Shown here piece after piece: positions 7,178-54,145 of a stretch of DNA of 64,000 nt. A program made the translations under genes and the position numbers. The DNA is taken from sequence record OP752703.1; one strand, given 5' to 3'. The stretch's first letter is position 1. Every line of letters begins with the position of its first letter. Under the pieces are notes generated by a model. The model was not told the DNA's origin. It saw only the letters and a list, made by a program, of their open reading frames with translations, and did not search any database.

Positions 7178-7647
7178 CCGACACCGAGAAGAAAGAACGA
7201 AAGCTGGATATGTTTGAAGTCCTCAAACAGATTGACGCTGGTAATCGAACTTTTCTAGATACTCTGGATGAAGATGCTAAGAAGGAATTCGTACCATTGT
7301 TGACGATGCGTTGGGCATCGTCAGCAGGCGGTATGCAGGCCGTCCTATTGAACGAGTTGGTAAACCCGATGGTATTCAAGGCTCACAACCACCCGGCCCT
7401 TCTATACAAGTTAATGGTAGCTTCTTCCAGTGGAAAGCAAAGGCGATACCGATGGCTGAAATCAAAGTCCAAGACTAAAGACAACAAGTTGACCATCAAA
7501 ACAATTGCAGGCTATTATAAATGTACCGCCAAGGATGCTGGTTACTACGCCAAGCGTCTACCTCTTGAAGATATTCTTGAAATGGCCGAAGCATTAGGTT
7601 ATGATTCCGACACTATTAAAGAACTAAAAGCTGAACACAAGAAATGA
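7174..7647 (+). CDS. Probable clamp loader small subunit (gp62-like)
   Basis: Helical protein with RWASS...LLNELVN and RRYRWLK, downstream of gp44-like gene. Confidence 0.6.
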   Translation: MTDTEKKERKLDMFEVLKQIDAGNRTFLDTLDEDAKKEFVPLLTMRWASSAGGMQAVLLNELVNPMVFKAHNHPALLYKLMVASSSGKQRRYRWLKSKSKTKDNKLTIKTIAGYYKCTAKDAGYYAKRLPLEDILEMAEALGYDSDTIKELKAEHKK

Positions 7648-8333
7648 CTGAGAATATCAAACCCTTTTACGAATGCGAATACTGTTTCAAGAAGCTGACC
7701 ACTCAGGCCAGACTTGACAAGCATAACTGCGAAGCAAAGAAGCGTGCAGACTACATGGCAACGAACAAGGGTAAGAGCGCATTCTACTGTTATGAAATGT
7801 GGAATTCACTTCGTGGATTCAAAGTTAATGGTGTAGAAACCTTTATGGACTCGAAATATTTCAAGTCCATTGAGCGTTTTATTAAGTTCTGCAACAGCAC
7901 TGGTATTCCAGATCGTAAGCATTACATTGAATACATGATTTCAAAGGAAGTAATGCCATTCAATTGGACTAATCCTGAAATCTATGATGAATACATCCAG
8001 CACTTTGATAACACGAAAACGCCAGAGGAAATGGCTAGAATCAGCATGGACACCCTATTCGATCTTGCAGACCTATTTGATTGTGAGATTAGTGAGGTTC
8101 TAAGTCACATGTACGCATCTGACCTGATGAAGCTCGTAGTAGCCCGTAAACTAAGCCCATGGATTCTACTGCCAAGTAAATCCTTCAAGAATTACATGAG
8201 AACGGAAGTTACTGCGGAACAGACAGTGTTGATTAACTCAACGATCAATTATGACATTTGGGGACGAAAGTTTCGAGAGAATCCAGAGGCCGTACAACAG
8301 ATGAAAGAAATCGTTAAGGAAATGGATTTCTAA
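7644..8333 (+). CDS. Hypothetical protein with N-terminal C2HC zinc finger
   Basis: YECEYCFKKLTTQARLDKHNC. Confidence 0.75.
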   Translation: MTENIKPFYECEYCFKKLTTQARLDKHNCEAKKRADYMATNKGKSAFYCYEMWNSLRGFKVNGVETFMDSKYFKSIERFIKFCNSTGIPDRKHYIEYMISKEVMPFNWTNPEIYDEYIQHFDNTKTPEEMARISMDTLFDLADLFDCEISEVLSHMYASDLMKLVVARKLSPWILLPSKSFKNYMRTEVTAEQTVLINSTINYDIWGRKFRENPEAVQQMKEIVKEMDF

Positions 8334-8337
8334 GTCA

Positions 8338-8363
8338 TAAATAGAGGGATCAAGTATCCCTCT
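8338..8363 (+). promoter_or_regulatory. Late-type promoter (TAAATA) abutting a hairpin, heading the virion paralogue array
   Basis: TAAATA 8338-8343; AGAGGGAT-caagt-ATCCCTCT 8343-8363. Confidence 0.55.
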
Positions 8364-8368
8364 AATAA

Positions 8369-9640
8369 ATGTCAAATTACACTTCCCGCTATCAGATTTT
8401 TTATACTGATAAAGATAAGACCCCAATTAGCGTCCCGCGTTCGTTAGTAGTAACTGACGCGGGCGATATTGTATTCATTGGTAAGAACCGTAAAGAATAC
8501 GGTGAGGTATTCAATACCAACGTTCTACATTTACTAGAACACTTCGCTTGTCCAGAAGGCAGCGATGGAATGCCAGACTACAATACTGTCATTAAACCAA
8601 CACTACGTAATCCCACGGTGGGACAAATTTGGTTTAATAAAACTAAAAAGTCTCCTTTCCTTTGGAACGGAACTAAGTGGGTATCCTTTGCTTCTCGTAA
8701 CCGAACTATCGGCGGAAACAATGGTGTACTCTATAATGGAAATCAAATTCCAGCCCCTCTTTCCAACATCAATGGAACACTAACCCCAATGCCTTACAGT
8801 GATTGTGCATGGACGGTATCTCCGTTCGGCATGACGGCTGCTACGCGCCTAACATATCTTGAATGTTACACTGACAAGGATGCATGGGTAACTATGCGTT
8901 ACATGGTTCAAGGCTCGCTAGAATTGGTAGAAGGTTATGCTAACTATCAGATCATTGGTGTAGGTGGATCAAATGAATGGAATGGTGGAAACAATGGTGT
9001 TCCTCCGTCAACCCCAAACATTCCGGGCTTGACTCCAACCCCATCAGTCACACGTTCAGGTACTCCGCAGCCAACCGCCCCGGTAACCCCGTCCGTCACG
9101 CCAACTATTACACGTACTCCGGGTATGACCCGCAGCCTGACCCCAACGCCAACGGCAAGCCGTACAGAAACGCCTGTACCGTCCGTCACGCGCACTCAGA
9201 CGCCTACCCCATCACCGACCCCAACGATTACTCCGACTGTTTCTCCGAGCGTCCCACCGCCGATCTGGATCAACATCTTCGATCAAAAGACGGTGAAGGA
9301 CGTTGCAGTAGGAACCGATTACTCATTGAACTATCGTATCACCGAAGCCGGTTTGATTATCATCTACGATAATTACGGTTTGAGTATTCCTAGCCAGTGG
9401 ATTTATAACGACAGTCCGGTTAATTATTCCATTAGGGTAAGTAATGTTGTCGGAGAACCACTAACTGGATTCGTAGATGATTGGCTGAATACGGGCGTTC
9501 AGAGAACATGGGGTATTGTAACTACAAATACTACTGCCGTTGGAACCTATACGGTTACCTTCTTGGTTGAAATTATGAGAAACGGCGATCAGCAGATCAT
9601 GGACCGTTGCAATATTACTCTGCAAATCAACGTGATTTGA
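8369..9640 (+). CDS. Virion/fibre-like paralogue 1 (shared N-domain, S/T/P stalk, beta-rich tip)
   Basis: YGE...LLEHFACPE...GQIWFN...CAWTVSP...ANYQIIG domain followed by TPTPSVT repeats. Confidence 0.8.
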   Translation: MSNYTSRYQIFYTDKDKTPISVPRSLVVTDAGDIVFIGKNRKEYGEVFNTNVLHLLEHFACPEGSDGMPDYNTVIKPTLRNPTVGQIWFNKTKKSPFLWNGTKWVSFASRNRTIGGNNGVLYNGNQIPAPLSNINGTLTPMPYSDCAWTVSPFGMTAATRLTYLECYTDKDAWVTMRYMVQGSLELVEGYANYQIIGVGGSNEWNGGNNGVPPSTPNIPGLTPTPSVTRSGTPQPTAPVTPSVTPTITRTPGMTRSLTPTPTASRTETPVPSVTRTQTPTPSPTPTITPTVSPSVPPPIWINIFDQKTVKDVAVGTDYSLNYRITEAGLIIIYDNYGLSIPSQWIYNDSPVNYSIRVSNVVGEPLTGFVDDWLNTGVQRTWGIVTTNTTAVGTYTVTFLVEIMRNGDQQIMDRCNITLQINVI

Positions 9641-9671
9641 GATAATAAATACACAGGATTAAGGATTTAAA

Positions 9672-11978
9672 ATGGCAAATTGCGCAGATTTTAGTTACAC
9701 CATTTACTATACAAATCAGGATAAGGGTACTATCCAGATTCAGAAGTCGGAGCTAAACACTACGACTCTTGACATTGCCCTTATTGGTAAGATTCGTCTA
9801 GAGTATGGTGAAATTTTCAATGAAAATATTCTCCACTTGTTGGAGAACTTTGCTGCTCCTGCTCTTCCGTCAGAAGACAAGCCGGATACCAGCAAGACTT
9901 TCAACGCTATTCTAAGTAACCCAACGGCAGGACAGGTGTGGTACAATACCACAGCTAACCGTCCATTCGTATATGGTAGTGATGGTGTTTGGAGAACATT
10001 TGGTAGCCTAGATGACGTAGCCGGTAACTCCGGGGTAATCATGGGCGACGGTAATAATGCTCTACCTATTCCAGTTTCTCAGGATGGTTACAACTTTAGT
10101 CTAGCTGAATGTAGTTGGAGCGTTTCACCATTCCACTTCCCTGATGAAGTTGACTTCCTACAATGTTATGTTAAGGAGGATGGTACTGTAGTTTCTGAGT
10201 ATCGCCTAGAAGGTTCATTGAATCTTATCAAGGGATTTGCCAACTATCAGATTCTAGCCATTAAGGGTAATACCAACTATGGTAATATTGATTCGGATAA
10301 CTGCGCACCGGGACCGCTACCGTCGATTACTCCGACCCCAACAATGACGCCAACCCCGTCAAACACTTCTCCGGTAACTCCGACGCCAACCATTACTCCA
10401 TCAGTAACGGTTTCTCAGACTGCGGATATTACCCCAACAGTAACACGTTCAGTAACTCCGTCAGTATCGGTTTCAGCTACTCCGTCACCGACACCGCCGT
10501 CAACTCCGACTGCTACGGTAACTCCGACCATTTCATTGACGCCTTCAACGTCATTGACTCCATCGGTAACCCCAACTATTTCAGTAACTCCATCCGTTAC
10601 GCCTTCAACTGCGTTTAATAATGGTGACGTATTCGCCGTGGCCTTCCGTCCATTCTCACTAGACGCTGGTACAGAGGCTATGTACGACCGTAAGATGGAT
10701 ATGAATTGGGGTACATTCAATTCTACCTACAGCTACACCACTAACTACTTCCCTGTAGCTAATGGTTCTGCTCCTGTAGAATCTCGTATTGGTACAATGA
10801 TGCGTGACTGGTATATTCAAGTCGCCTCTCCTGTAATCTATGGTTATGGTGTGAACTTAGGCGTCGGTGTATACCCGGCTGCTGCTCTATCATTTGAAGG
10901 ACAGTTGAACCAGCCTGTCTCCTTGACTGCTGACAACATTTTGGCTTATGTTGGTTTCATTAATAATTCTGATGCAGCAAATGTACTGTCAACTATCCAG
11001 ACCTTCACATTTGATGGCGTAACTTTCCAACAGACTCTAAAGACTGCCACCTTGACCAATCAGAATATCGATGATATGTTCAGAATTGATGAAAATCTAA
11101 TTCTGGTCAAGAGTCATTTGATTCTAAACGGCGAAGAAAAGGGAACTGCATTCGGCGTATATCGCAACGAACCAACAGGTCTAAATCTAGTTGGTGCGCC
11201 AGTAACTTATGTCGATTATATCGAAGCCGTTGCTGTAACCAACCAGAACCATATTGCTATTGTTGATACCAATAATGAACTAACTCATTACGTATATGAT
11301 GCGACTAATGGTTTGAATGCCGTAAGCACTCTAGACCTATCAACTCTAACTACCACGCCTATCAATGCCATCAAGTATGACAAGGATAGCTTGAATCTAT
11401 ACGTAATGTATGCAGTTGATGCGAATACTACTGGATTCCGTCAGATCAATACAAGTGCAACAACCTATACACTAGGTACTTCCATTACTCTGCCAATCGT
11501 AGCTGAAATGGAACTATGCTCTTCGATTGACGTATTCAATGACCGTGTTCTATACTTGGATATTACTGATCCTGCGGCAAAGCTAATGAAGACCTTAACC
11601 CACTTCGGTGGAGCTTTCAGTCAGACCGGTTCTATTGCACAAATTCCAACAGGCCGTGATCCACAGTCTGTATCGTTCATCGTGCCTAACCTACCGCGTC
11701 CAAGCTTCACGCCAACGCCGTCAGTAACTCCGTCACATACTCCAACACCGAGTTCGACACCGCCAGTAACACCAAGCACAACTCCACCGTCTACTCCACC
11801 GAGTACGCCGCCTAATACTCCACCGAGTACGCCGCCAGTAACGCCAAGCTCTACTCCCGCAGCGTCATCGGAACCACCAATTGGCTGTAATTGTGAAGAA
11901 TATGGTCCCGGTTGTTATGATACAGGAGGCGGATGCCAGTGTCCGGGTGAAGAGTTTGAACGCCCGTGTAACCTATAA
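9672..11978 (+). CDS. Virion/fibre-like paralogue 2 (two stalks, propeller-like middle, 6-Cys C-terminal module)
   Basis: Shared LLENFA domain; repeated beta-strand region; ends GCNCEEYGPGCYDTGGGCQCPGEEFERPCNL. Confidence 0.8.
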   Translation: MANCADFSYTIYYTNQDKGTIQIQKSELNTTTLDIALIGKIRLEYGEIFNENILHLLENFAAPALPSEDKPDTSKTFNAILSNPTAGQVWYNTTANRPFVYGSDGVWRTFGSLDDVAGNSGVIMGDGNNALPIPVSQDGYNFSLAECSWSVSPFHFPDEVDFLQCYVKEDGTVVSEYRLEGSLNLIKGFANYQILAIKGNTNYGNIDSDNCAPGPLPSITPTPTMTPTPSNTSPVTPTPTITPSVTVSQTADITPTVTRSVTPSVSVSATPSPTPPSTPTATVTPTISLTPSTSLTPSVTPTISVTPSVTPSTAFNNGDVFAVAFRPFSLDAGTEAMYDRKMDMNWGTFNSTYSYTTNYFPVANGSAPVESRIGTMMRDWYIQVASPVIYGYGVNLGVGVYPAAALSFEGQLNQPVSLTADNILAYVGFINNSDAANVLSTIQTFTFDGVTFQQTLKTATLTNQNIDDMFRIDENLILVKSHLILNGEEKGTAFGVYRNEPTGLNLVGAPVTYVDYIEAVAVTNQNHIAIVDTNNELTHYVYDATNGLNAVSTLDLSTLTTTPINAIKYDKDSLNLYVMYAVDANTTGFRQINTSATTYTLGTSITLPIVAEMELCSSIDVFNDRVLYLDITDPAAKLMKTLTHFGGAFSQTGSIAQIPTGRDPQSVSFIVPNLPRPSFTPTPSVTPSHTPTPSSTPPVTPSTTPPSTPPSTPPNTPPSTPPVTPSSTPAASSEPPIGCNCEEYGPGCYDTGGGCQCPGEEFERPCNL

Positions 11979-11986
11979 GGTATTAA

Positions 11987-13267
11987 ATGACAACGTATAC
12001 AATTCGTAAAACCGATATAAATGAACCTACAATCACTGTCCCGCAAGAGACAGTGATTCGCGGTGTCGTGGACTTGCCTATTATAGGTCAATTTAAAACT
12101 GATTATGGTACTGAGGTAAACCAGAGTCTATTAAATCTTCTAGAAAACTTTGCTTGCCCCGAAGCACCGGGAGCGACAGATGATGATGATGCTGTTCCTG
12201 ATCTTTCTAAAACTTCTGATGACCAGCTAGGAAATCCTACGGCTGGACAGTTGTGGTACAACAGTACCCGTGAGAAGATTTATTATTGGGATGGTACTAC
12301 ATGGGCTGCTGCTCCTATTCGCAATCAATATGCTGCGAATTGGGGACGTGCATTACACGGTCAGTATCTTCCAAAGCCAGTAGCTAGAGACGGTAGAGTT
12401 TTTGAATACAGTGAATGTATCTGGTCAGTATCACCGGCAGTATTCTCTGCGGCAATTGATACTTTCAACTGTAACACCGATCAAAATGCTAAGGTAACTG
12501 TGCAGCAGCGTTATGCAGGCCGTGAAGGTCTAGTTAACAGTGTAGCAAACTATTTGATTATCGGTATCGACAACAACGTTAATAATGGGCGTTGGGATAT
12601 TGTCACACCTATTCAAGTATCCCCTACACCATCTCCGACTGCATCGGTAACGCCAACCGTAACTGCAACTGTAACTCCTTCGGTTACTACTTCGGTAACG
12701 CCATCCATTTCTCCAACGCAGACGCCAACACAGACGCCTTCGAGAACTCCGGCTGTAACTCCGTCGAATACACCGCCAGTTACTCCACCGGCAACACCTA
12801 CACCTACTCCGTCCAATACAGTGGTGACATATTGCTGGACCTCTGGTCAGTTGTGTCTAGGTTTCTTGGGCGATAATAATGGTACTCCTGATTTCCGTAG
12901 ATTCTGGAAAGATAATACTTCTGGACAACCAACCCCGGATTCGTGTGCATACAATACTACTTACCATAGCGCTTTTGGCCTCATTTATTATAGTTATCCG
13001 GTGCGTTTCCTAACTCTAGCAGCCTCGGTCCCGATAACTATTACTGCTTCAAATGGAGCGCAAAATAGTCAGAATATAATTTTCAATACTACAAAGTCTC
13101 CGAGTGAAAATTATTTTCAGGAAACTGTCACAAGAACGCTTAATGTTGGCGGCGTAGACGTACCTATTCAGGCACTAATGACTTGGAATAAGCGCGCAGG
13201 TAATAGTAATGCCGCAGACGGTACTTTAACGGTACAACTTTCATTCCCTAACGGGGGTAGATGCTAA
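11987..13267 (+). CDS. Virion/fibre-like paralogue 3
   Basis: LLENFACPE...GQLWYN...ECIWSVSP domain, S/T/P stalk, unique tip. Confidence 0.8.
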
Positions 13268-14370
13268 TGGCTTCATTTTACACAGTACATCGAACTGATA
13301 TTTCGGCACCTTCAATTGAAGTGCCGAAGTTTTCACGTAACACTACAGACCTTGGTATTACCTTAACTGGTAAGATCAACCGTGAGTATGGTGAAGAACT
13401 TGACCAAGCGTATTTGAACGTATTGGAAAACTTCGCTTGCCCGGAAGATTCTAATAATCCCGGCAACCCTGATTTGTCTAAGACTTCTCAGGAGCAGTTG
13501 AGTCGCCCTACTATAGGTCAACTTTGGTATAATAGTTCAAAGGAAAAGATTTTCTTCTGGACTGGAACAATCTGGACTGGAACAGCAAACCGTGGTGAGT
13601 ACGCTGCCAATTGGGGTAGAATCTATTCTGGTGAACAACTACCAAAGCCGGTTAATCCTGTGACTGGTAGAGTATTTGAATATAGTGAATGTATTTGGTC
13701 AGTATCTCCTGCTGCCTTCCTAGGTAAGCCGGGCTACTTGGCATGTTCAACGGATTCCGATGCCAAAGTAACCATGCGCTATCGTTATTCAGGAACCAAT
13801 AACATCATCGGTAATCCTTCGGACAATCCAGAAGTACATGGTATTGCGAACTTCTTGATTATTGGCATTCCGGGTGTTGTTGAGCATGATTATGGTGTAT
13901 CCCCGCCAGAACCGTCATCTACGTCAACTCCTACTCCAACACCGACGCCTTCGACAACGCCAAGTTCAACGGTAACTCCGACTCCTACTGCATCAGTTAC
14001 TCCTACAACTACGCAGTCCTTGTCGCCGACACCGACGCCTGCTCCGTCGAATTCTGCAACGCCTGCTCCATCGTCTACGCCGACAATGACACCTTCGAGT
14101 ACACCGGCCTCAACACCGCCAGTTACTCCGTCACCAACACCAGCCGGTCGATTCGATTGGGTATTGACTAACTCATGGGCTGGTCAGGAAAATCATGGTT
14201 GCCGACCAGACGATTTGGACACTGGACAAGCTCTGGACCAAGCTAATGCCTACTTCCAGCAATATCCATGTGATATGGAAAGCTTAGGTGCATACTATCA
14301 AGTAAATTGGTGTGACCCCGGTAGCCCAACCTCAATCGGTGTATATGGTTGGGAATGTATGATTATATAA
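13261..14370 (+). CDS. Virion/fibre-like paralogue 4 (short 4-Cys tip)
   Basis: Same N-domain; stalk; tip ending YGWECMII. Confidence 0.8.
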
Positions 14371-14385
14371 GATATAAATATCCAC

Positions 14386-15429
14386 ATGAATGAATATATC
14401 GTAAGTCATACCGACCCAACCGAAAAACCGATAGTAATTGAAGAAGCAGAGACAGCGAAAGCTGGCTCTGCTCTTACTCTGTTGGGCAGAATTAAACCTG
14501 AGTATGGCGAGATTCTAGATCAAGACTTCTTGAATCTTCTAGAGAACTTTGCATGCCCCGAGAGTCCAGACTCTATTGACATTAGAACTTCTTGGCCTGA
14601 TCTTTCACAGACTAGTGATAATCAGTTAGAGAAGCCTATCCTAGGTCAGCTATGGTATAACTCTACTAGAGAACTTCCTTACAGTTGGGATGGTACTCGC
14701 TGGAATCCTATTGCGCTTCGTGAAAACCTAGCAGCAAATTGGGGACAAGTATATCATGGCGCACAACTTCCAAAGCCTGTCAGCCCGCTAACAGGTCAAG
14801 AGTTTGATTATGAAGACTGCATCTGGTCAGTAGCTCCTGCAAGCTTTGTAGGTAAGCCGGGTTATATGGCCTGTGCAACGGATGACCAAGCTGTAGTAAC
14901 TATGAAGTATCGTTTGGCGGGAACCAATACCATTATCAGTGGTATTGCCAACTATTTGATTATTGGTATTAAGGGTAACTACAATATCGGAACTATCATT
15001 CCGCCGATTGAGATTACTCCATCGACAACGCCAACGGCTACACCAACGCCAACTCCGTCATTGACCCCATCGATCACTGCATCTATTACAGCTTCGATTA
15101 CACCGTCTCCGACACTTTCGTTGACACCAACGCCAACACCGTTGCCATCTAACTCCGCAACACCGGCTGTATCTCAGACAGCGTTCCCAACGCCGACTCC
15201 GACCAACACGCCATCGTCAACGCCACCGGCAAGACCGTATTACCAGATGACCAGCGAGCGTTGCACTTACCACCCTAATTGGGAAGTTATATATGGATGC
15301 CCGGAAGAACCGTCTAACTATAACTGTCAAACCGTTGCGGATATTGGTAATAGACAAACAACTACTTCTGACTGTTATTCTGGTAATGGCGTTTTGCGCT
15401 GTGTCCGACAGTGGGAATGCAGACTATAA
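14386..15429 (+). CDS. Virion/fibre-like paralogue 5 (short 6-Cys tip)
   Basis: Same N-domain; stalk; tip ending RQWECRL. Confidence 0.8.
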   Translation: MNEYIVSHTDPTEKPIVIEEAETAKAGSALTLLGRIKPEYGEILDQDFLNLLENFACPESPDSIDIRTSWPDLSQTSDNQLEKPILGQLWYNSTRELPYSWDGTRWNPIALRENLAANWGQVYHGAQLPKPVSPLTGQEFDYEDCIWSVAPASFVGKPGYMACATDDQAVVTMKYRLAGTNTIISGIANYLIIGIKGNYNIGTIIPPIEITPSTTPTATPTPTPSLTPSITASITASITPSPTLSLTPTPTPLPSNSATPAVSQTAFPTPTPTNTPSSTPPARPYYQMTSERCTYHPNWEVIYGCPEEPSNYNCQTVADIGNRQTTTSDCYSGNGVLRCVRQWECRL

Positions 15430-15453
15430 ATATTGAACTAGACAAAGATTATT

Positions 15454-17046
15454 ATGACTGAGTATATCGTTAAATTTACCGACAAGTCGAAGACCCCTAT
15501 TACCGTCTATGAAAATAGTATTGATAATTCTTCGACTGACATTTCACTTCCGGGCCGAAAGAAGCTAGAATATGGACGCGATCTTAACGCGAACTTCCTG
15601 CACATTCTAGAAAACTTCGCGTGTCCAGAAGACCCGGAAAATCCGGGTTTCCCTGATTTCGAGAAGGCTTCATTCCAGTCTGATACTAATAAGAAGCTCC
15701 TAACCGCTCCGGTCGAAGGTCAATTATGGTTTAACTTGACCCAAGAAACTCTATTCGTATGGAATGGATCGGCATGGCTTGCTCTTGGTATGGATGGAGA
15801 TATTGCATCCAATTGGGGTGTCCTAACTGACGGCATGCAGATTCCACGTCCTAAGAACAAGTACGGATATACTTTCAAGTATGAAGAATGTGCATGGATC
15901 GTTTCACCATTTAAGTTGGAAGGCTCTTTCCGTTATATGCAGTGTACCACTGACGATAATGGTTGGGTAACTATGACTTACACCCCTGAATCACCCAATG
16001 CCGCTCCTATCAAGGGCTGCGCCACTTACATGATTGTAGGTATTAAGGGTAACGTAAACTTGGGTCAACAGGAAGGTATTCCTGATGCTACTCCAATTCC
16101 GTCACCAACCCCAACCCCAACTCCTTCGATTACAAAGTCTGCACAACCAACACCAACCGCGTCGGTAACTCCTACTCCGTGGGTATCTGCTACTCAGACT
16201 CCACAGCCGACTCCATCAGCCACACCCCCTCCATCAGCCTCGCCAACTCCAACCCCGATCAATTATATTGCATCGATTTCGGCAAGTCCGGCAGGGCAGG
16301 TAGCACCGGGTGCTAATATTTGTTATACTATTAGCTTGAACTATCCTGCACCGGCAGCGGGTAAGGATGTTCGTCTGATCCGTTCAGGTGATACGTCTAA
16401 TATCTGTGCGTCCACCGAAGGAGAAACAGTTGGTCCGATTATCAGTGACGAAACAATTCAATTCAGTGCAGGACAGCTATCTACACAGATTTGTCGTACT
16501 GCACCGGCTGCTCCACCACCGCCACCAACTCCTACGGCTACACCGCGTTATGCATGTAAGCAAGTAGCTGCCGATGGTAACGTATGGGGTGCAACATATT
16601 GGACTGGATTCATGTGTCAGACTAATAATGGTGGTCCGCAAGATTACTTTACAAATACTTCGGGTGGTAGTGGTAACTATTATCCATGTACTCAGTGGAC
16701 TGCATGTAATAATGCTACTTCATTCTCTTCAACTCAAACGATTGCAAACAATCCAGTAAGAGGAAATAGAGTATATTACAACGCAGTACCAGCAGCACAG
16801 TTAGTAATGCAGATTCAGATTCCGGGTGTAGCTTCTTCTAATGTATTCAACACTTACATTTATGGTACAACTCCACAGACTCAGACACACATTTTGACTG
16901 CTGGTAGCCGTACCTTCACTCTAGTAATCAATATGAATCCAGTTCTAGTAAGTACCAGCGGCTCCAACAAAACTTGGACCATCTACACTGACTACACGGT
17001 AACTGACAATCAGACTGGCGTAGTAACTGCCTTCTGTAACATTTAA
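15454..17046 (+). CDS. Virion/fibre-like paralogue 6 (Ig-like middle and beta-rich tip)
   Basis: Same N-domain ([10 protein letters not shown]); stalk; [10 protein letters not shown] Ig-like segment; poly-Pro linker. Confidence 0.8.
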
Positions 17047-17056
17047 GGAAATATTA

Positions 17057-17557
17057 ATGGCTATCGTATGTAACTCAATCGTCCCGCCTCTCTCGGTATC
17101 ACTACCGGGAGGCTGCACAGGATTCCAGCAGAATGATACCTACCCATCAGCGTGTGGTGCAGGTACGTCTTCTGCAACGTGTAATCTTAACATTAGCGGT
17201 GGCGTTCCACCGTATAATACCAGCTTCTCCTACATTCAGACTCCGAACATCGTTCAATTCTGTACCCTAAACGCTGCGGCATTCACTGGCGGCGGTGGTA
17301 CTAATCCAGCATTCGGATTTGCATTCAGTGGAAGTAACATGTGTAACATTTTCATTAGAGGCATTCTGCAAGTAGCTTATACTGTAACTGACTCTTCGGG
17401 TCAACGTGTAGATGGTAATGCTCAGTACGATGTTCATGTGGAACGTTCAGTCGCATCTGCTGGCTGTGATTGTTCAGCTTATGGACCACGTTGTTATGAC
17501 GTAGGTGGTGCTTGCCGATGTGCCGGTCAAGAATACGATCTACCTTGTTACTTGTAA
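17057..17557 (+). CDS. Cys-rich virion-associated protein sharing the 6-Cys C-terminal module of 9672..11978
   Basis: Ends GCDCSAYGPRCYDVGGACRCAGQEYDLPCYL; lacks the shared N-domain. Confidence 0.75.
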   Translation: MAIVCNSIVPPLSVSLPGGCTGFQQNDTYPSACGAGTSSATCNLNISGGVPPYNTSFSYIQTPNIVQFCTLNAAAFTGGGGTNPAFGFAFSGSNMCNIFIRGILQVAYTVTDSSGQRVDGNAQYDVHVERSVASAGCDCSAYGPRCYDVGGACRCAGQEYDLPCYL

Positions 17558-17605: not shown

Positions 17606-17773
17606 ATGTATATCTTTGTAAGAAAATCAGATAGAATGATCGTTGGTTACGCAAACCGTCCCGTAAGTGAAGAGGATATGGAGCGTCAGGGTAACTTGGT
17701 TTTTCAGGTTGACAAGTCGGAGTTTTCCGATACAATGTTAGGTCAAACCTTGGAAGACTTTGATATCAAATGA
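17606..17773 (+). CDS. Small hypothetical protein (55 aa, not in the ORF track)
   Basis: MYIFVRKSDRMIVGYANRPVSEEDMERQGNLVFQVDKSEFSDTMLGQTLEDFDIK*; stop overlaps the next ATG (ATGA). Confidence 0.6.
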   Translation: MYIFVRKSDRMIVGYANRPVSEEDMERQGNLVFQVDKSEFSDTMLGQTLEDFDIK

Positions 17774-18438
17774 AACGTATCACTAATCTACAAACTGGTA
17801 AAAATGCTGAATACATTCAGCGCCAGTGGATTCATGTTGGGGCAATCCGTGACCGACTTATCTCTGCCACTGAGTGGACTCAGAACGGAGATAATCTACT
17901 AACTCTTGAATCATATATCTTGTGGTCTGATTGGCGACGTAAGGTCTATGATGTTTCTGAGGCAACGTATTCTTCTCCCGAAGAAGCTGAGGCAGCACTA
18001 AATGTGTTGAATGATTCTAAGCCTCTAACCGTTAACACTTCTACCGTAATGCGACAAAAGAAGTATCGACTTGATCTATCTTCTATTGATGCTGCAAAGC
18101 GAGACGGTAAACGAATCGTTAGAGAATTCCTAAATGATTATATTGAAAATTCATTACCGGAAAGTATTAACATCATCAACCTAAAGTATCAGAGTTACTT
18201 ACTATGGAAGGATTCTGGTATGGATCACTTCCTACATTTCCCTATCTTGCAGACGCATAAGGAAATGGAAGACTTGGATATCAATGAAACTATTGACGAT
18301 ATCCTAAGCACTTACAAGACTGCTACTGAACTAGTGGCTAATCAGATTAAAATCAGCAAACAGATAGAGTGTGAAATTGAAGACGCTCCTAATCTTAAAA
18401 CTATTATTGCAATTGTAAAGAAAATGCACGGCTATTGA
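17770..18438 (+). CDS. Tail-fibre assembly chaperone-like protein
   Basis: IRDRLISATEWTQNGDNLL...WSDWRRKVYDV resembles the R..LL..SDWTQ..D...W..YRQ.LRD tail assembly chaperone motif; follows the fibre array. Confidence 0.55.
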   Translation: MKRITNLQTGKNAEYIQRQWIHVGAIRDRLISATEWTQNGDNLLTLESYILWSDWRRKVYDVSEATYSSPEEAEAALNVLNDSKPLTVNTSTVMRQKKYRLDLSSIDAAKRDGKRIVREFLNDYIENSLPESINIINLKYQSYLLWKDSGMDHFLHFPILQTHKEMEDLDINETIDDILSTYKTATELVANQIKISKQIECEIEDAPNLKTIIAIVKKMHGY

Positions 18439-18452
18439 CCGTGCATTTTTCA
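18421..18452 (+). terminator. Intrinsic terminator
   Basis: AAAATGCACGG-ctattga-CCGTGCATTTT(T). Confidence 0.7.
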
Positions 18453-19421: not shown

Positions 19422-19930
19422 AGTTTGTTGAGAGTCTTATTGACGTATTCAATGTTATCTGGAATTGGCTTACGCTTTTTGCGTTTGCTTTTGATAACAC
19501 CGCCCATTTTATATGTCGGAAGGGGACCGATTACGCGAGTAACGAATTCTGTAGGATAAGCTCGGATAAGTGGAGCAACTACACCGGCTAGACCTAGGCG
19601 GGAGAATTCGATAGAGAGAGGGTGGGACTTATGACGTTCTGAGTAGAACCAGTCTTCGGCGATTTTGACGACTGCCATTTCATCAATGGAGTTTGGACTG
19701 CATAGGTCCAGTACGTAACCGACGATCTGTTTATTGTGTACGTTATCGACAATTACAAGCACATTGTCATTATTGTACCTAATCAGAGTAATAAAGGGAT
19801 ACCCTGTATACCCCTCGGGGTGAGGTTCGGTAATAAGAGGAATTGATTGAGTCTTTCGCATTATAGTCAACTTTAGTTTCTTATAAGTATTTATGGACCC
19901 AAAATGCTCTTGTATAATACAATGTAGCAT
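19418..19930 (-). CDS. Hypothetical protein (true start may be about 19863, MRKTQS)
   Basis: ORF; minus-strand TAAATA near 19890. Confidence 0.7.
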   Translation of the reverse strand: MLHCIIQEHFGSINTYKKLKLTIMRKTQSIPLITEPHPEGYTGYPFITLIRYNNDNVLVIVDNVHNKQIVGYVLDLCSPNSIDEMAVVKIAEDWFYSERHKSHPLSIEFSRLGLAGVVAPLIRAYPTEFVTRVIGPLPTYKMGGVIKSKRKKRKPIPDNIEYVNKTLNKL

Positions 19931-19963
19931 AAATAAAGTTATAAATTAAATGGACATTCTTCA

Positions 19964-25397: not shown

Positions 25398-25488
25398 GAA
25401 ACTATTTATCCATACTATATCTAAATAGAGTTATCCTACGGGATATACAACGCAATAAAAATGTTCACTAACTATGGGAGTCATATAC

Positions 25489-26601
25489 ATGAACACTAAC
25501 TATAAGCACGACCTTGTAATTTTCCTTGGCCGCATGCAGCCGCCTACGATTGCCCACGTAGCTTCAATCATGGAAGCTCTAAAGTACGGTAAGTTCGTAA
25601 TGGTGGGTCTAGGAACCCACAACAGTCCCCGCACGCCTAAGAATCCTTGGACCACTGAGGAACGCATTGAAATGCTAAAGGCAGCAATCCCCGTCCAGTT
25701 CCATCCTCGCCTTGTATTCGTGGGTCTAGAAGACTTCCCGAACGATTCAGAGTGGGTCGCTAACGTTGGCAGTCTTGCACGTGCAGCTTCACGCCAGCTT
25801 GTTGGTAAGGATGACAACATCGCAATCCTTGCGCATAAGAAGGACGACAGCACCTACTACCTAGACTACTTCAAGTTCTTGAAGGATATTATTCCGTTCG
25901 ATGAAGTTAAGCTATCGGACACGCAGGCGGTCCTCTCAGCTACCAAGATTCGTGAGCTAATGTTCACTGGCTATCTTGGATTCTGCGCCCCGGCTCTACC
26001 GGAAGGCGTCATTGATTGGATTAGTAAGTGGATTGGTAGTGAAGGCCATCAATATGTCCAGAATGAATGGGACGAAGGTATTAAGTATGAGAAGGCATTC
26101 CATAATGCTCCTTACGGTAACACCAACTTCTACACCGCAGATAGCGTTGTAATTCAGTCGGGTCACATCCTGCTAGTACAGCGTGGTAAGGCACCGGGTA
26201 AGGGTCTATGGGCGCTACCGGGCGGTCATGTCAATAACAATGAGACTGGCTTTGAGGCATCACTACGTGAGCTAGAAGAAGAAACTTGCATCAAAGTTCC
26301 TCGTAAGGTTCTAGTAGGTAGCCGTTACGGTATGAAGTTATATGACGACCCTGATCGTTCACTACGCTGCCGTATCAGCGGTAAGTATGGTCGTACTGTT
26401 ACGAACGCAAACTTCTACAAGCTAAACGATCAGGAATCATTGGCTCGCGTTAAGGGAGCAGATGACGCTGTAGTAGCTAAGTGGGTTGCGATTGACGTAT
26501 TCTTAAATGAAATGAAGCCAGTGATGTTTGAAGATCACTATAACATTGGCGCGGATGCGATCAAGCTAGTGCCAGACGAACGAGCAATGGCACTATTGTA
26601 A
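25489..26601 (+). CDS. nadM: Bifunctional NMN adenylyltransferase / Nudix ADP-ribose pyrophosphatase (NadM-Nudix, NatV-like)
   Basis: GRMQPPTIAH, SATKIR, Nudix box GGHVNNNETGFEASLRELEEET, GADDA; GGGAG RBS. Confidence 0.92.
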   Translation: MNTNYKHDLVIFLGRMQPPTIAHVASIMEALKYGKFVMVGLGTHNSPRTPKNPWTTEERIEMLKAAIPVQFHPRLVFVGLEDFPNDSEWVANVGSLARAASRQLVGKDDNIAILAHKKDDSTYYLDYFKFLKDIIPFDEVKLSDTQAVLSATKIRELMFTGYLGFCAPALPEGVIDWISKWIGSEGHQYVQNEWDEGIKYEKAFHNAPYGNTNFYTADSVVIQSGHILLVQRGKAPGKGLWALPGGHVNNNETGFEASLRELEEETCIKVPRKVLVGSRYGMKLYDDPDRSLRCRISGKYGRTVTNANFYKLNDQESLARVKGADDAVVAKWVAIDVFLNEMKPVMFEDHYNIGADAIKLVPDERAMALL

Positions 26602-31240: not shown

Positions 31241-31268
31241 CAGATACAACATTCTAAGTACCGACGCA

Positions 31269-31294
31269 TAAATAACTCCTATACATTAGGAGTT
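31269..31294 (+). promoter_or_regulatory. Late promoter plus RBS-sequestering hairpin of the homing endonuclease
   Basis: TAAATA 31269-31274; AACTCCTA-tacat-TAGGAGTT hides the AGGAG RBS. Confidence 0.75.
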
Positions 31295-32144: not shown

Positions 32145-32195
32145 AGGGGTTTGGTAGTCAAACCCCTTGACTTACAGGCAGAGACGCCTTATAAT
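32145..32195 (+). promoter_or_regulatory. Sigma70 promoter for nadV overlapping an inverted repeat
   Basis: TTGACT 32167-N17-TATAAT 32190; AAGGGGTTTG-gtagt-CAAACCCCTT. Confidence 0.75.
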
Positions 32196-32264
32196 TCTCA
32201 ACATCGAAACACAACAACAACTCAACGTAACAAATTCATTCAATCACTAAGGAGTTTAGGATAT

Positions 32265-33674
32265 ATGAATATTAATACTGACAACATCGTGCTTAGAACC
32301 GACGGATATAAAGTGCTTCAATACAAGCAGTATCCGCCGAAGACCACTAAGGTATTCTCATACGGTGCATCACGCGGTAGCAAGTACACTGATAAGACCC
32401 TATTCGCCGGTCTACAGTACTACCTAAAGGCTAATCTAGCCAAGCCCCTAACCCACGCAGACATTGACTTTGCTAAGATCGTCCTAGACGCTTATGGTAC
32501 GGGCTTCAATGAAGCTGGCTGGCGCTACATCGTAGACAAGCACGCTGGCATCTTCCCGCTACGTATCCGTTCACTACCGGAAGGAACTATTGTACCAACT
32601 GGTACGGTTCTATACACGGTTGAGAACACGGACAGCGAATGCTTCTGGCTTGTCAGCTACCTAGAGACTGCAATTCTTCGTGACGTATGGTACATGACCA
32701 CGGTCGCTACCAACTCGCGTCTATGTAAGGAAGTAATCCTAGAAGGTCTAGAGAAGACTTCGGACAACGCTGCCGATCAGGAAGTGATGTTCAAGCTACA
32801 CGACTTCGGCGCTCGCGGTGTTAGTTCACACGAAAGTGCTGGTATGGGCGGTCTGTCGCACATCATCAACTTCAATGGTTCGGACACCCTAGAAGGTATT
32901 ACGTTCGCTATGAAGTACTATGACGCACCGGTCAGTGCATTCGGTATTCCGGCTTCGGAACACAGCACGATCACGTCATGGGGCCGTAATGGTGAGTACG
33001 ACGCTTATGCCAACATGGTTGAACAGTTTGCAAAGCCGGGTGCAATCTTCGCTTGCGTAAGTGATAGCTACAACATTTACGAAGCTGCACGTGGCTGGGC
33101 AACCTCGGGTCTACTAGACAAGGTTAAGGAAAAGGGTGCCATCGCGGTTATCCGTCCTGACAGTGGCGATGCAATGACTGTTCCGATCAAGATCATTGAA
33201 ATCCTTATGGAAGAAGTTGGTTACACGGTCAACAGTAAGGGTTTCAAGGTTCTACCTGACCACGTTCGCGTAATTCAGGGTGACGGCATCAACCGTGAAT
33301 CGCTAAAGGTTCTAGTTCAGAACATGATCGACGCCGGTCTAAGCCTAAGCAACCTAGCCTTCGGTATGGGTGGCGGTCTACTACAGCACGTCAACCGTGA
33401 CGATCTAAAGTTCGCACAGAAGTGCAGTGCTGCTCAGGTCGCTGGTGTATGGCGTGATGTTTACAAAGACCCGGTGGATTCACCGGACAAGAAGTCGCTA
33501 AAGGGTCGCTTGTCGGTCATTCGTAATGTAGAAACGGGCGAGTACCGTAACCACGTAACGGATTACCCGATTCCCGAAGGCTTTGAAGATGCGATGGTAA
33601 TCGTATACGACAATGGCATCGTGGACAGTGCAATGCTAACGCTTGAACAGGTTCGCGCTAACTCGAACAAGTGA
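32265..33674 (+). CDS. nadV: Nicotinamide phosphoribosyltransferase (NAMPT)
   Basis: TDGYK, LHDFGARG, PASEHS, VSDSY, IRPDSGD, IQGDG, FGMGGGLL; start from AGGAG/AGGA RBS. Confidence 0.95.
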   Translation: MNINTDNIVLRTDGYKVLQYKQYPPKTTKVFSYGASRGSKYTDKTLFAGLQYYLKANLAKPLTHADIDFAKIVLDAYGTGFNEAGWRYIVDKHAGIFPLRIRSLPEGTIVPTGTVLYTVENTDSECFWLVSYLETAILRDVWYMTTVATNSRLCKEVILEGLEKTSDNAADQEVMFKLHDFGARGVSSHESAGMGGLSHIINFNGSDTLEGITFAMKYYDAPVSAFGIPASEHSTITSWGRNGEYDAYANMVEQFAKPGAIFACVSDSYNIYEAARGWATSGLLDKVKEKGAIAVIRPDSGDAMTVPIKIIEILMEEVGYTVNSKGFKVLPDHVRVIQGDGINRESLKVLVQNMIDAGLSLSNLAFGMGGGLLQHVNRDDLKFAQKCSAAQVAGVWRDVYKDPVDSPDKKSLKGRLSVIRNVETGEYRNHVTDYPIPEGFEDAMVIVYDNGIVDSAMLTLEQVRANSNK

Positions 33675-36479: not shown

Positions 36480-37790
36480 ATGGCTGTTATGCTGGTCGAA
36501 TCGACCGATCCCAATCTATCGTTCCATCTTAAAAAGAACCCTGCCACTGGCTTGGTTGTAAAGCGTATGCGTAAGGGCGCACTATCTGGCTGGTATCCTA
36601 ACGGTGATACACAGAAGTACGCACTGTTCTTCCACGATGACACCAACAACTCTTCATTTGCTAACGATGGAAAGAACTACACTGATATGACGCGCTACAC
36701 CAGCACGTACTTCGTGTTCCATTCCATTAGCACTATGTTCAGTTCGGTTCTAAAGCTGGATGCTTCGCAGCAAGTATTCAAGCACAAGATCACCATTCCG
36801 TCTGTGCAGATGCGTGCAGAGAAGACCATTGGTCATCTTAACAAGTTCTTGAACCTTGGCCTAACCGTAACCAAGAAGTCTGAGGGCATCGATAGCCTCG
36901 CGCTATATTCGGTCACGTTGGAGCTAGAATCGACGTTCAATGAGTTCATGATGCGTACCTACGTACTCTTCTACCTTCTTCACGCAGACCTGTTCCAGAG
37001 CGATCTAGGCTATATGGAAGGTATGATTGAAAAGGTTACCAAGATTCTAGTAGAGCTAAAGGCTGAATACTTCCTATGGTATCTGTTCAATAAGAACATC
37101 ATCTGCCGTGAATCAACATTCAAGAAGCTACAGCCGACTCTAGGCAACGGTAGCCAAGACGGAAAGATTGAACTACACTATGGCGGAACGCAGCAGCAAC
37201 GCAAGGCGTTCGTTGACTCCCAAATGGACTTCAAAAATGATGTATTGGATATTGGTTGCGGTGAGGGTTATTTCCTACTACCGTATGCTAAAAAACTTCA
37301 TAATGGTAAAACGATTACTGGCGTCGATAAGGACGCAAGGCTTATCAACGGTATTGCTAACAAGGTTGAAGACCGTAAGCAAGAAGATAAGGTAAGTCTG
37401 TTCACGTCGATGGACGATTTCTACGCACAATATGATAATTCTGTCAAGGATATTATCTGTGTTGAAGTAATCGAACATATGCCTGAGAAGGATGCGTTTA
37501 ACCTTCTACGTGAAGCTTTGATGAAGGTTCGTTTCCGTAAGGCAATCATCACGACTCCGAACCGCGACTTTAATCAATTCTACAAGACTATGGTTGGTTT
37601 CCGTCATGACGATCATCACTTTGAATTTAATAATGCAGAGTTTGAGGCATTCATCAAATCGGTAAATGATTCGATCTGGATGGAAGAAGACTGTCCGTAT
37701 TGGGAATTTGAATACATGCCCGTAGGCGATATCGTCAACGGTATCTCAATGGCTCAGGCCGTTGTAATCACTAACAAGATGGAAGAATAA
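36480..37790 (+). CDS. hen1: Hen1-type 3'-terminal RNA 2'-O-methyltransferase
   Basis: N-terminal LSFHLKKNP; VLDIGCGEG; VEVIEHM; TTPNRDFN; FRHDDHHFEF. Confidence 0.88.
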   Translation: MAVMLVESTDPNLSFHLKKNPATGLVVKRMRKGALSGWYPNGDTQKYALFFHDDTNNSSFANDGKNYTDMTRYTSTYFVFHSISTMFSSVLKLDASQQVFKHKITIPSVQMRAEKTIGHLNKFLNLGLTVTKKSEGIDSLALYSVTLELESTFNEFMMRTYVLFYLLHADLFQSDLGYMEGMIEKVTKILVELKAEYFLWYLFNKNIICRESTFKKLQPTLGNGSQDGKIELHYGGTQQQRKAFVDSQMDFKNDVLDIGCGEGYFLLPYAKKLHNGKTITGVDKDARLINGIANKVEDRKQEDKVSLFTSMDDFYAQYDNSVKDIICVEVIEHMPEKDAFNLLREALMKVRFRKAIITTPNRDFNQFYKTMVGFRHDDHHFEFNNAEFEAFIKSVNDSIWMEEDCPYWEFEYMPVGDIVNGISMAQAVVITNKMEE

Positions 37791-37791
37791 A

Positions 37792-39096
37792 ATGGATTAC
37801 TCTCTACAAAACAAGATCGCTCGCCGCTTGAAGCAGCTAAAGCGTGACAATGTAAAGTTTATCTCAGGAACGATTGCTCCTGCACAATCCTGTACCGATG
37901 TTATGTCTATTGAGCCGGTACACACGGCTCTAGAATATTACGAAGAAAAGGATATGGACCTAAAGCTATCCGTCCAGCTAAAGTGGATGGGGTCGCGTGG
38001 TAGCATGTATCTCTTCCAAGGTAAGCTAGAAGATTCTTTCCTAGTAACACGTAGTGGTTTCAAGATCGGATACGGTTCTGACCGTCTAGAAGACTCGAAG
38101 AATTTCTTCAAGCATTGGTACAAGAAGGTATTTGACGATGCCGCCTTTGCTGGTGCCAGTGAAGTCATTCTAGATGGCGAGGCTATGCCGTGGAATGCAA
38201 TCGGTGAAGGTTTGATTCAGCGTCAGTTCGTTGGCTACTCAATGGCCGTGCATGCCGAAGTTGACTTCCTAGAAAAATACAATTTTGGCGATGCAATCCG
38301 TAATACGATTATGTCCGATGCTATGGGTGATTACGACAAGCTAGAGCCTGAACAAAAGAAGAAGCATCCGATGCGTGAGACTTATGAAATCATCGCAGAA
38401 GGTTTGGCTAATTACGATAACGATACTCAGCGTGAATGTATTGATAAGTTCGACACTCAGTTGGATAATTACAATCGTAATGAAAAGCCCTTCTTCGTAG
38501 CGTTCGACATTCTTCGAATTAAGTACCCGGACGGTACAGTAATGGTAGATGAAGGCTGGCTAGCTTCACACGTCACCAAATACAGCTTCCTGCGTACCAA
38601 GTGGCCTGCACCGGCTAAGAAGATGGTCAAGCGAATCATGGATGCTATCGCTGAAAAGAACGATTATGTGTCTGGTGATAATATTTCATTCAGGGATATT
38701 TTCGACATTGGCCTTCCTGTTGGGGCCGATTCGGATACCCAAGAGCAGTTGGAAGAGCTTATGGCTCTTGTTCAGAGCTTTGGGTTTGAAGGTATCATGG
38801 TTAAGCCCGAATTCCCTATGGATACCGATGCTGTTCACGCCATGAAAATTCGTAATCCCGAGTATCTACGTTTGATTTATGGTCATGACTATACGATTAA
38901 GGGTAAGTACGAAGCGCTAGTTGAAGGTAAGCGAACAGGTAAGAAGCGTAAGCTATCGCATAATGAATATCGCCTAGGTATTCAGATGCTAAAGCTGAAT
39001 GAATCTTCTCCAACCTATGAAGAAGACTTCGAGCGCATTGCCAAGAAGATTCTTTTCGACATTGAAGAAGAATCAACGGTTGATAGTCGTCTATAA
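37792..39096 (+). CDS. Pnkp-type RNA ligase (stand-alone ligase domain)
   Basis: KWMGSR (adenylylated Lys motif), DGEAMPW, EGIMVKP, KIRNPEYLRLIYG, C-terminal VDSRL. Confidence 0.85.
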   Translation: MDYSLQNKIARRLKQLKRDNVKFISGTIAPAQSCTDVMSIEPVHTALEYYEEKDMDLKLSVQLKWMGSRGSMYLFQGKLEDSFLVTRSGFKIGYGSDRLEDSKNFFKHWYKKVFDDAAFAGASEVILDGEAMPWNAIGEGLIQRQFVGYSMAVHAEVDFLEKYNFGDAIRNTIMSDAMGDYDKLEPEQKKKHPMRETYEIIAEGLANYDNDTQRECIDKFDTQLDNYNRNEKPFFVAFDILRIKYPDGTVMVDEGWLASHVTKYSFLRTKWPAPAKKMVKRIMDAIAEKNDYVSGDNISFRDIFDIGLPVGADSDTQEQLEELMALVQSFGFEGIMVKPEFPMDTDAVHAMKIRNPEYLRLIYGHDYTIKGKYEALVEGKRTGKKRKLSHNEYRLGIQMLKLNESSPTYEEDFERIAKKILFDIEEESTVDSRL

Positions 39097-48170: not shown

Positions 48171-48215
48171 TTTTTGGTGTCCTTAATTTACCTGTTATTT
48201 ATACTCTTAGGAACA

Positions 48216-50879: not shown

Positions 50880-50910
50880 GTGAAGGCCGCTTACGCGGCC
50901 TTTACTGTTT
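50880..50910. terminator. Bidirectional terminator
   Basis: GTGAAGGCCGC-ttac-GCGGCCTTTAC between convergent genes. Confidence 0.75.
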
Positions 50911-54113: not shown

Positions 54114-54145
54114 TTATATAGCAAGTCTCTGGTCAAACGCAACTA

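Follow-up and report, generated by a model that had tools for sequence, protein, structure and literature searches.

A tandem array of six anchor-stalk-tip genes in the Stenotrophomonas jumbo phage RAS14, a probable virion-anchored adhesin set related to tail fibres

Sets of several receptor-binding proteins that are joined via conserved N-terminal domains have been described for the phages CBA120 (TSP1-4) and RaK2/phiK64-1 (gp526-534) (PMC10253068). A comparable layout was found in a stretch of 64 kb of DNA, hereafter the window, that is 100% identical to the Stenotrophomonas jumbo phages RAS14 (OP752703.1, 319.6 kb) and CM1. On the + strand of the window, positions 8369-17046 contain six open reading frames (ORFs) in succession, each coding for a common N-terminal domain (N-domain, composed of the parts N1 and N2), a stalk rich in Thr, Pro and Ser (T/P/S) and a C-terminal tip; a seventh ORF is located at 17057-17557. 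We consider it fairly probable that the six genes constitute a virion-anchored adhesin set derived from tail fibres. A literature search found no account of this array. In the RAS14 record its genes are annotated as hypothetical except gene 5, which is labelled 'D-alanyl-D-alanine carboxypeptidase'; Pfam and PHROG give this label no backing and it is probably an artefact of low complexity.

Like the array, the CBA120 and RaK2 sets consist of adjacent paralogues with a conserved N-terminal region, binding the particle or a partner, and with differing C-termini. They belong to large myoviruses, including RaK2-like phages, which are distant relatives of XacN1. However, the CBA120 and RaK2 proteins are trimeric tailspikes whose bodies are beta-helix depolymerases and whose heads are T4 gp10-like or D1 domains, whereas the proteins of the array have a disordered tether and small tips (57-452 amino acids, aa). 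No pectate-lyase or beta-helix depolymerase family was detected in the six proteins and 89 family members, and in a PDB fold search the model of the N-domain matched CBA120 TSP3 only locally and without significance (29-35 columns, E 1.2-2.4). The N1 fibre arrays of uncultured myoviruses, of Atu_ph07 (gp176) and of RaK2 (ORF065) resemble the present array by a homologous N1 of ~110 aa and by their tandem genes. Their proteins are devoid of N2, rarely stalked, about 630 aa long, and have fibre shafts and collar or fibre C-termini, whereas neither PF07484 nor a tail-fibre PHROG was detected in the six proteins, in which a low-complexity stalk stands in place of the shaft. In addition, the N1 fibre genes adjoin baseplate genes after a gene of the gp177 family, whereas the array of the XacN1-like clade sits in a replication block. 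The sequence-only reading of this DNA had also evoked a cellulosome. Cellulosomes are secreted systems of cells, not phage systems, and the likeness is limited to the concept of one docking module, Pro/Thr-rich linkers and diverse modules; the analogy did not hold in the searches, where no Pfam dockerin or cohesin was detected and the structural matches to cohesins reached only E 0.3-1.3 with a template modelling (TM) score of 0.15. The array differs from both kinds of phage sets by N2, the disordered stalk, the small non-enzymatic tips and the genomic location.

The organisation of the array and of the two genes that follow it is given below (positions in the window).

Gene 1, 8369-9640, + strand, 423 aa: N-domain 8369-8995, T/P/S stalk 8996-9274, tip type A 9275-9637.
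Gene 2, 9672-11978, + strand, 768 aa: N-domain 9672-10298, stalk 10299-10619, large tip type C 10620-11678, second stalk 11679-11882, six-Cys knob 11883-11975.
Gene 3, 11987-13267, + strand, 426 aa: N-domain 11987-12595, stalk 12596-12844, tip type D 12845-13264.
Gene 4, 13261-14370 (start at 13267 in the RAS14 record), + strand, 369 aa: N-domain 13261-13884, stalk 13885-14157, 70-aa Cys-rich mini-tip type G 14158-14367; variable slot.
Gene 5, 14386-15429, + strand, 347 aa: N-domain 14386-14988, stalk 14989-15255, 57-aa Cys-rich mini-tip type J 15256-15426; variable slot.
Gene 6, 15454-17046, + strand, 530 aa: N-domain 15454-16071, stalk 16072-16275, two-domain beta-rich tip type B 16276-17043.
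Gene 7, 17057-17557, + strand, 166 aa: conserved core 17057-17452, six-Cys knob 17462-17554.
Tail-fibre-assembly/tail-chaperone-like gene, 17770-18438, + strand, 222 aa: terminates at a terminator-like hairpin (18420-18450).

The six N-domains share 34-52% pairwise identity over ~200 aa (E values from 1e-35 to 1e-73). Their alignment displays 44 invariant columns, among which are the motifs quoted in the sequence-only reading, which had rightly recognised six consecutive genes with this common domain. A hidden Markov model (HMM) built from the six recovered no further copy in the window. The stalk, announced for each protein, is present in all six: it begins at residue 202-210, comprises 68-107 aa, of which 63-75% are Thr, Pro or Ser, and is mucin-like in being both Ser/Thr/Pro-rich and disordered. 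Gene 2 possesses a second T/P/S stalk near its end (aa 670-739). At the DNA level the stalks show only a low-complexity similarity of 60-70%, and no long identical tracts suggesting recent gene conversion were found in them. The tips (57-452 aa) had been described as unrelated, and BLASTP detects no mutual similarity among them; the exception lies at the end of gene 2, whose last 31 aa form the same six-Cys knob as the last 31 aa of gene 7 (58% identity, E 2e-11). Two tips, those of genes 4 and 5 (70 and 57 aa), are indeed tiny and Cys-rich. No signal peptide is apparent at the N-termini of the six proteins.

Searches of Pfam and of PDB sequences with the six proteins and gene 7 gave no match. 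In PHROG all six proteins belong to phrog_15511 (function unknown), with E values from 1e-99 to 5e-127 (2.7e-105 for gene 1). A profile search for relatives of the N-domain among 1.84 billion representative sequences recovered 223 cluster representatives at E<=1e-30 and 5136 matches at E<=1e-3. The N-domain is always N-terminal in these relatives, whose length varies from 196 to 1786 aa, and it is directly followed by a T/P/S stalk in 129 of the 150 best representatives. About 20 of the 150 family representatives have the size of an N-domain alone; genes of this kind (~200-210 aa, without stalk or tip) are called at 12001-12633 of locus L003 (position 5 of Xoo-sp13), 9211-9819 of L012 and 9977-10612 of L013.

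The AlphaFold model of the gene 5 N-domain (predicted local distance difference test, pLDDT, of 94; predicted TM score, pTM, of 0.73) contains in N1 two short strands, a helix at residues 40-54 with the motif LLENFA and hairpins at residues 89-108, and in N2 a beta-sandwich spanning residues 115-195. N2 carries two invariant Cys. A PDB fold search with this model returned nothing significant, the top match being the AP22 tail fibre gp53 (E 0.019). In the viral predicted-structure library BFVD, the significant matches found past the orthologues were a tail-collar fibre, a collagen-repeat fibre, a baseplate protein containing a gp10-C domain (E 6.5e-4) and a protein with a tail-collar domain, all with E values between 5e-5 and 7e-4.

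Sequence comparisons place N1 among the N-termini of fibre and virion proteins. At E 1e-11 to 1e-6 the search reached distant relatives of ~690 aa, which have residues ~1-110 in common with it and carry the tail collar domain PF07484 near the C-terminus; pairwise BLASTP between N1 and one such collar protein (P0193) gives E 4e-19. In contigs of uncultured myoviruses, these collar-type N1 genes adjoin genes for proteins of 4000-5000 aa. N1 (~110 aa) also aligns with the N-terminus of Atu_ph07 gp176 (hhalign 98.3%, E 1.4e-14); gp176 matches the N-domain model structurally (E 2e-3), and its C-terminus matches a tail-fibre PHROG. This protein was detected by mass spectrometry in purified virions, with 14 peptides and a coverage of 36% (PMC6102473 Table S5). 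The gp176 gene is located four genes from that of the giant virion protein gp180, with the baseplate wedge genes gp181 and gp182 just past it. A gene of the gp177 family (~200 aa), annotated as structural or baseplate protein in RaK2-like phages, stands before the N1 genes of Atu_ph07, RaK2 and marine contigs; in RaK2 the gene after it, ORF065 ('virion structural protein' by annotation), bears the N1 motifs (HMM E 3e-7).

More than 400 loci of IMG/VR encode N1. Among the N1-only loci that were fetched, 66 of 77 contain three to five tandem N1 genes (three genes in 48 of 77), and the N1-only proteins have a median length of 630 aa. In one distant N1 array that was examined, the C-terminal parts of all three tandem genes match tail-fibre or tail-collar PHROGs. 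The sequence-only reading had stated that domains of the LLENFA type are common in phage structural proteins, which agrees with these hundreds of loci, mostly tandem arrays. The proposed docking role of the N-domain is plausible in view of the homology of its first ~110 aa to fibre N-termini, including gp176, and of the tail-collar and fibre matches in BFVD. A T/P/S stalk was found in 16 of 19 full-domain proteins of the IMG/VR loci versus 3 of 237 N1-only proteins; N2 and the stalk are confined to the XacN1-like clade. Of 185,579 species' genome assemblies, only one contained the full N-domain, on a contig belonging to a metagenome-assembled bin, and this domain is essentially absent from cellular genomes.

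The tips were compared in eight related genomes, namely RAS14, XacN1, Xoo-sp13 and five metagenomic arrays, in which the array genes are orthologous by position. Stalk length is conserved by position as well, with about 90, 106, 90, 95, 90 and 68 residues from position 1 to position 6. Positions 1, 2, 3 and 6 hold the tip types A, C, D and B, respectively, in nearly every genome (type A in six of the seven genomes where position 1 is held). Between RAS14 and XacN1 the tips are more diverged (32-54% identity) than the anchors (56-66%). The tip of gene 1 is orthologous in XacN1 and Xoo-sp13 (38-41% identity), the core of the gene 2 tip is conserved in all relatives (28-34% identity), and the tip of gene 6 is the best conserved, with 53-54% identity to XacN1 and Xoo-sp13. 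Variation is found at positions 4 and 5, which bear an A-type tip of ~130 aa, a Cys-rich mini-tip (type G with 70 aa, type J with 57-64 aa) or no tip at all. Tip G, at position 4 in RAS14, is found at position 5 in two metagenomic arrays (L090 and L091), tip J, at position 5 in RAS14, is found at position 4 in another (L089), and position 4 of XacN1 and Xoo-sp13 holds an A-type tip. RAS14 alone among the arrays compared has mini-tips in both slots. The exchange of tips among relatives, as foreseen by the sequence-only reading, is therefore observed at positions 4 and 5, but not at the four other positions, which nearly always keep their tip type. More distant arrays (three or four genes, on contigs of 316-350 kb and shorter) carry other tip types. 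We counted 14 tip clusters in 14 arrays, and 50 among 115 representative tips together with the tips of the three phages. Pfam names only a few tips of the family (SprB repeat, DUF285, fn3, Barwin, Gly_rich_2 and HINT). HINT or pretoxin-HINT tips occur in 3 of 89 family members (P0074, P0177 and P0178) and in none of the window proteins; they suggest self-processing ends in some relatives.

In the AlphaFold model of gene 6, the stalk is disordered (pLDDT below 50) and is followed by two confidently predicted, beta-sandwich-like domains (aa 273-349 and 368-530, pLDDT about 80-96). This model fits the earlier description of a beta-rich or Ig-like tip, and no significant match to PDB was found with the model or the tip. 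The gene 2 tip had been described as propeller-like, for which its sequence gives no support: it has no PDB match and no internal repeats. The distribution of Cys was analysed in the tips of the seven window proteins and in 115 family tips. The number of Cys is even in 72% of tips, the first Cys tends to sit near the stalk, and a Cys occurs within the last five residues in 21% of the family tips (8.5% expected) and in six of the seven window proteins. Such a pattern, as read from the sequences, would fit extracellular domains closed by disulfides.

Gene 7 consists of a core of 132 aa kept in all relatives (51-53% identity in XacN1 and Xoo-sp13) and of a variable end. In RAS14 this end is the six-Cys knob; XacN1 and three metagenomic genomes have a module of ~150 aa instead, and the remaining genomes a Gly-run. 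The ends of the gene 2 orthologues vary likewise: past the second stalk there is the knob, another Cys-rich module, a different sequence that is not Cys-rich, or nothing. Gene 7 had been taken for a tail-chaperone-like gene, but it matches neither Pfam nor PHROG and gives no chaperone signal. It behaves as a free-standing tip rather than as a chaperone, because its XacN1 orthologue aligns over the entire tip of an N-domain protein (P0127, E 9e-39). By direct BLAST, gene 7 of RAS14 finds only its orthologues and, via the knob, gene 2 and the close relatives of gene 2 P0002 and P0007. A single-linkage cluster that joined gene 7 to 43 metagenomic tips was dropped, the link passing through the longer orthologue of XacN1. 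The C-terminal extension of the latter (..YTHN..) was also considered as a HINT domain and rejected, with no Pfam match and no similarity to a HINT-bearing family member.

The part of the chaperone claim that stands concerns the gene 17770-18438, two places after the array, which resembles genes for tail fibre assembly or tail chaperones. The family PF16778 is detected in its orthologue of L090 with 27.5 bits, above the cut-off of 26.6; the scores are 17-18 bits in two others and 15.5 bits in the window copy, all over the same ~40 residues. The L090 orthologue also matches the PHROGs 'tail assembly chaperone' (5e-9) and 'tail fiber assembly' (5e-6), and a profile of eight orthologues matches PDB 2kz6 over the invariant motif (E 2.7e-4). 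The gene product has a motif region of ~40 residues in common with PF16778 and PHROGs 4697 and 4912, in which W36, T37, Q38 and D41 are invariant in 8 of 8 orthologues, whereas it differs from PF16778 proteins by its size (222 aa) and its long unrelated C-terminal part. A near-consensus sigma-70-like site (11/12) lies at 17709-17736, just 5' of this gene. The hairpin at its end (18420-18450) is strong, with a 12-bp stem and a T-run.

Promoter-like motifs containing ATAAATA, which equals the core of the T4 late promoter, precede several genes of the array and recur elsewhere in the window.

8336-8343, + strand: CATAAATA motif, 25 nucleotides (nt) before the start codon of gene 1; in seven genomes the spacer ahead of gene 1 contains an unchanged ATAAATA.
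9645-9651, + strand: ATAAATA motif, 20 nt before the start codon of gene 2; found at 20-21 nt in six genomes.
14373-14380, + strand: TATAAATA motif, 5 nt before the start codon of gene 5; exact T4-late-like octamer, kept at 5 nt in six genomes.
15425-15432, + strand: TATAAATA motif, 21 nt before the start codon of gene 6; found at 21-23 nt in six genomes.
19928-19935, 31267-31274, 48196-48203 and 58842-58849: further ATAAATA/TATAAATA sites.

Of the 22 ATAAATA sites of the window, 15 are intergenic, the non-coding fraction being ~7% (binomial 3e-13), and most have a start codon 20-28 nt further on. Each of the four exact TATAAATA sites is located 5' of a stalk-bearing gene or of the operon of such a gene. 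The one at 14373-14380 may be too near the start to serve gene 5 itself. A scan for sigma-70 promoters in the window found 35 sites for 30 expected, which is not above chance. By analogy with T4, the conserved motif before genes 1, 2, 5 and 6 gives indirect support to the previous designation of these genes as late genes, and a late timing of the array is plausible.

The genes surrounding the array encode an UvsW-like helicase, clamp-loader subunits and a fragment of Pol III alpha and, further out, proteins of the deoxynucleoside monophosphate (dNMP) kinase type, of NAD salvage and of RNA repair, a ligase and a topoisomerase. The same synteny is observed in XacN1, Xoo-sp13 and the five metagenomic relatives. 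Since the array is flanked by replication genes and this synteny is kept in relatives, its surroundings are not a classical structural module. The window ranges 36480-39096, 32151-33674, 25474-26601 and 50891-56659 hold a Hen1 and Pnkp-like RNA-repair pair, NAMPT and NadM/Nudix genes of NAD salvage, topoisomerase II subunits and an NAD-dependent DNA ligase. Other genes that bear on the array, by their stalks or by their position, are the following.

7644-8333, + strand: gene upstream of the array, 229 aa, with a Cys/His-rich N-terminal motif (phrog_11058).
41516-42529, - strand: tail-protein gene, 337 aa; PHROG 'tail protein' (E 4.5e-54) and also 'minor tail protein'.
42536-43288, - strand: gene after 43305-47852, 250 aa, no PHROG match.
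43305-47852, - strand: stalk-rich gene, 1515 aa, with five Thr/Pro/Ser-rich segments, the longest at aa 203-523.
58876-61587, + strand: stalk-rich gene, 903 aa, with Thr/Pro/Ser stalks at aa 370-482 and 648-891 around a middle domain (phrog_24956).

In every relative the gene 7644-8333 directly precedes the array; XacN1 and Xoo-sp13 have it at 55% identity. This gene was examined as a counterpart of the gp177 family and rejected (BLASTP not significant, hhalign probability of 0.2%); no gp177-family gene was found in the window, and the XacN1 counterpart is ORF329 (E 2e-32), in the baseplate module. The order in this module (L094, 192000-222000) is wedge genes, ORF325 (a giant protein of 3313 aa with short Thr/Pro/Ser segments near its end), ORF326, ORF327, ORF328 (a family-9 glycosyltransferase, GT9) and ORF329. 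The array is the sole N1 set of the XacN1-like clade, because the slot that follows the gp177-family gene in XacN1 contains no N1 gene. The operon of 43305-47852 has an exact TATAAATA upstream, at 48196-48203. In this operon a stalk-rich gene is followed by a gene with a strong tail-protein match, and tail-related genes therefore do occur among replication genes in this phage. The product of 58876-61587 displays 53-54% identity with XacN1 and Xoo-sp13 in its N-terminal 370 aa, and a CATAAATA motif is located 26 nt before its start. With this second stalked protein, mucin-like stalks appear as a wider trait of this phage.

Several points weigh against a virion-anchored set derived from tail fibres. 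Ordinary tail fibres are structured trimeric shafts and not low-complexity tethers. Detectable fibre relatives concern N1 only, that is half of the anchor, while N2 and most tips match nothing known, and the RAS14 gene 17770-18438 itself scores 15.5 bits against PF16778, below the cut-off of 26.6. The array is surrounded, on its own strand, by a block of genes for replication and nucleotide metabolism. According to the text of the XacN1 paper, the authors saw no tail fibres by electron microscopy, and the same text contains no mention of the array orthologues ORF232-237 among the virion proteins (PMC5852040). Display on the virion had accordingly been affirmed too strongly in the sequence-only reading. 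The objection drawn from the replication block is softened by the array being the only N1 set of the clade, by the tail genes present elsewhere among replication genes and by the nearby fibre-assembly-like gene.

These points have their place in the other explanations that we considered. The six proteins could be carried by the virion as whiskers of the capsid or neck, decoration fibres that would widen the capture radius or adhere to slime and would not be the primary receptor binders. Atu_ph07, which possesses gp176, shows hair-like whiskers that are apparently mainly capsid-associated, one N1 protein of a distant array weakly matches the PHROGs 'head decoration' and 'virion structural protein', and thin flexible tethers with small tips would easily be missed by negative stain, in keeping with the microscopy of XacN1. 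We nevertheless regard whiskers as unlikely, since most annotated matches are tail fibre or tail collar, the N1 genes of Atu_ph07, RaK2 and marine contigs adjoin baseplate wedge genes and the gene of a giant baseplate-associated protein, and a fibre-assembly-like gene accompanies the array. The location in the replication and nucleotide-metabolism block, together with the lack of fibres seen on XacN1 and of a mention of ORF232-237 among virion proteins in the text of that paper, would also suit proteins that are not part of the virion and act in the infected cell or after lysis, as soluble binders of the host envelope or of exopolysaccharide, as decoys or as surface-altering factors, the N-domain serving for oligomerisation or another role. 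In carbohydrate-active enzymes secreted by bacteria, small binding modules are typically joined to a constant module by Thr/Pro linkers. Such a role is quite unlikely in our opinion: the proteins have no signal peptide, their N1 is homologous to proven virion and fibre proteins, T4-late-like motifs and a fibre-assembly-like gene are found at the locus, and other tail-related genes are also scattered among the replication genes of the window.

A layout made of a constant head, a linker and a hypervariable end recalls polymorphic toxins, and in such an effector system the tips would be released as payloads, with the N-domain as the module for trafficking or loading. The HINT/pretoxin-HINT tips of 3 of 89 family members and the two very small Cys-rich tips of the array point in this direction. 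However, no tip of the window matches a toxin, enzyme or HINT family in Pfam or PHROG, no small immunity-like genes are interleaved, four of the six tips are stably inherited and not hypervariable, and other tips of the family match domains of adhesin or binding type (SprB repeat, DUF285, fn3 and Barwin). A toxin-like system is thus very improbable.

In the adhesin set derived from tail fibres that we favour, the anchor formed by N1 and N2 would give all six paralogues one type of docking site on the particle, with the baseplate or tail as the likeliest location. The disordered Thr/Pro/Ser tether of 68-107 residues would stand in for the rigid trimeric shaft; if extended, it would measure ~20-30 nm, and it is perhaps O-glycosylated. 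Each tether would end in a small globular tip, often closed by disulfides, that binds a structure of the host surface. Positions 1, 2, 3 and 6 would provide the core set of tips and slots 4 and 5 would draw on a small exchangeable repertoire. The free tip-like gene 7 and the fibre-assembly-like gene would round off the module, which appears to be transcribed from promoters of T4-late type.

Glycosylation leads to a bolder proposal. XacN1 virions display at least two Schiff-positive glycoprotein bands of unnamed identity (PMC5852040). XacN1 encodes glycosyltransferases, one of which (GT9) is in the baseplate module. A link of these glycoproteins and glycosyltransferases with the stalks is speculation. 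The proposal, which we put forward as a rather doubtful one, is that the clade has swapped rigid shafts for mucin-like Thr/Pro tethers O-glycosylated by phage glycosyltransferases, giving four fixed and two exchangeable 'tentacles' with disulfide-closed heads. If this were true, the tentacles would represent a flexible, glycoprotein-based apparatus of host capture not described for any phage, and they would account for the apparent lack of fibres, the glycoprotein bands and the wide host range of XacN1.

The XacN1-like jumbo phages infect Xanthomonas and Stenotrophomonas and have been reported without tail fibres. The array contains the only genes of the clade with a fibre N-terminal module and is therefore the prime candidate for their host-recognition apparatus. 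The analysis also defines N1 as a portable fibre anchor, which hundreds of viral contigs carry in the form of tandem arrays. If the adhesin set derived from tail fibres is confirmed, the logic of an anchor plus a variable end, known from multi-receptor phages, can also make use of disordered and possibly glycosylated tethers in place of structured shafts, and a function would be given to an uncharacterised family with thousands of metagenomic relatives.

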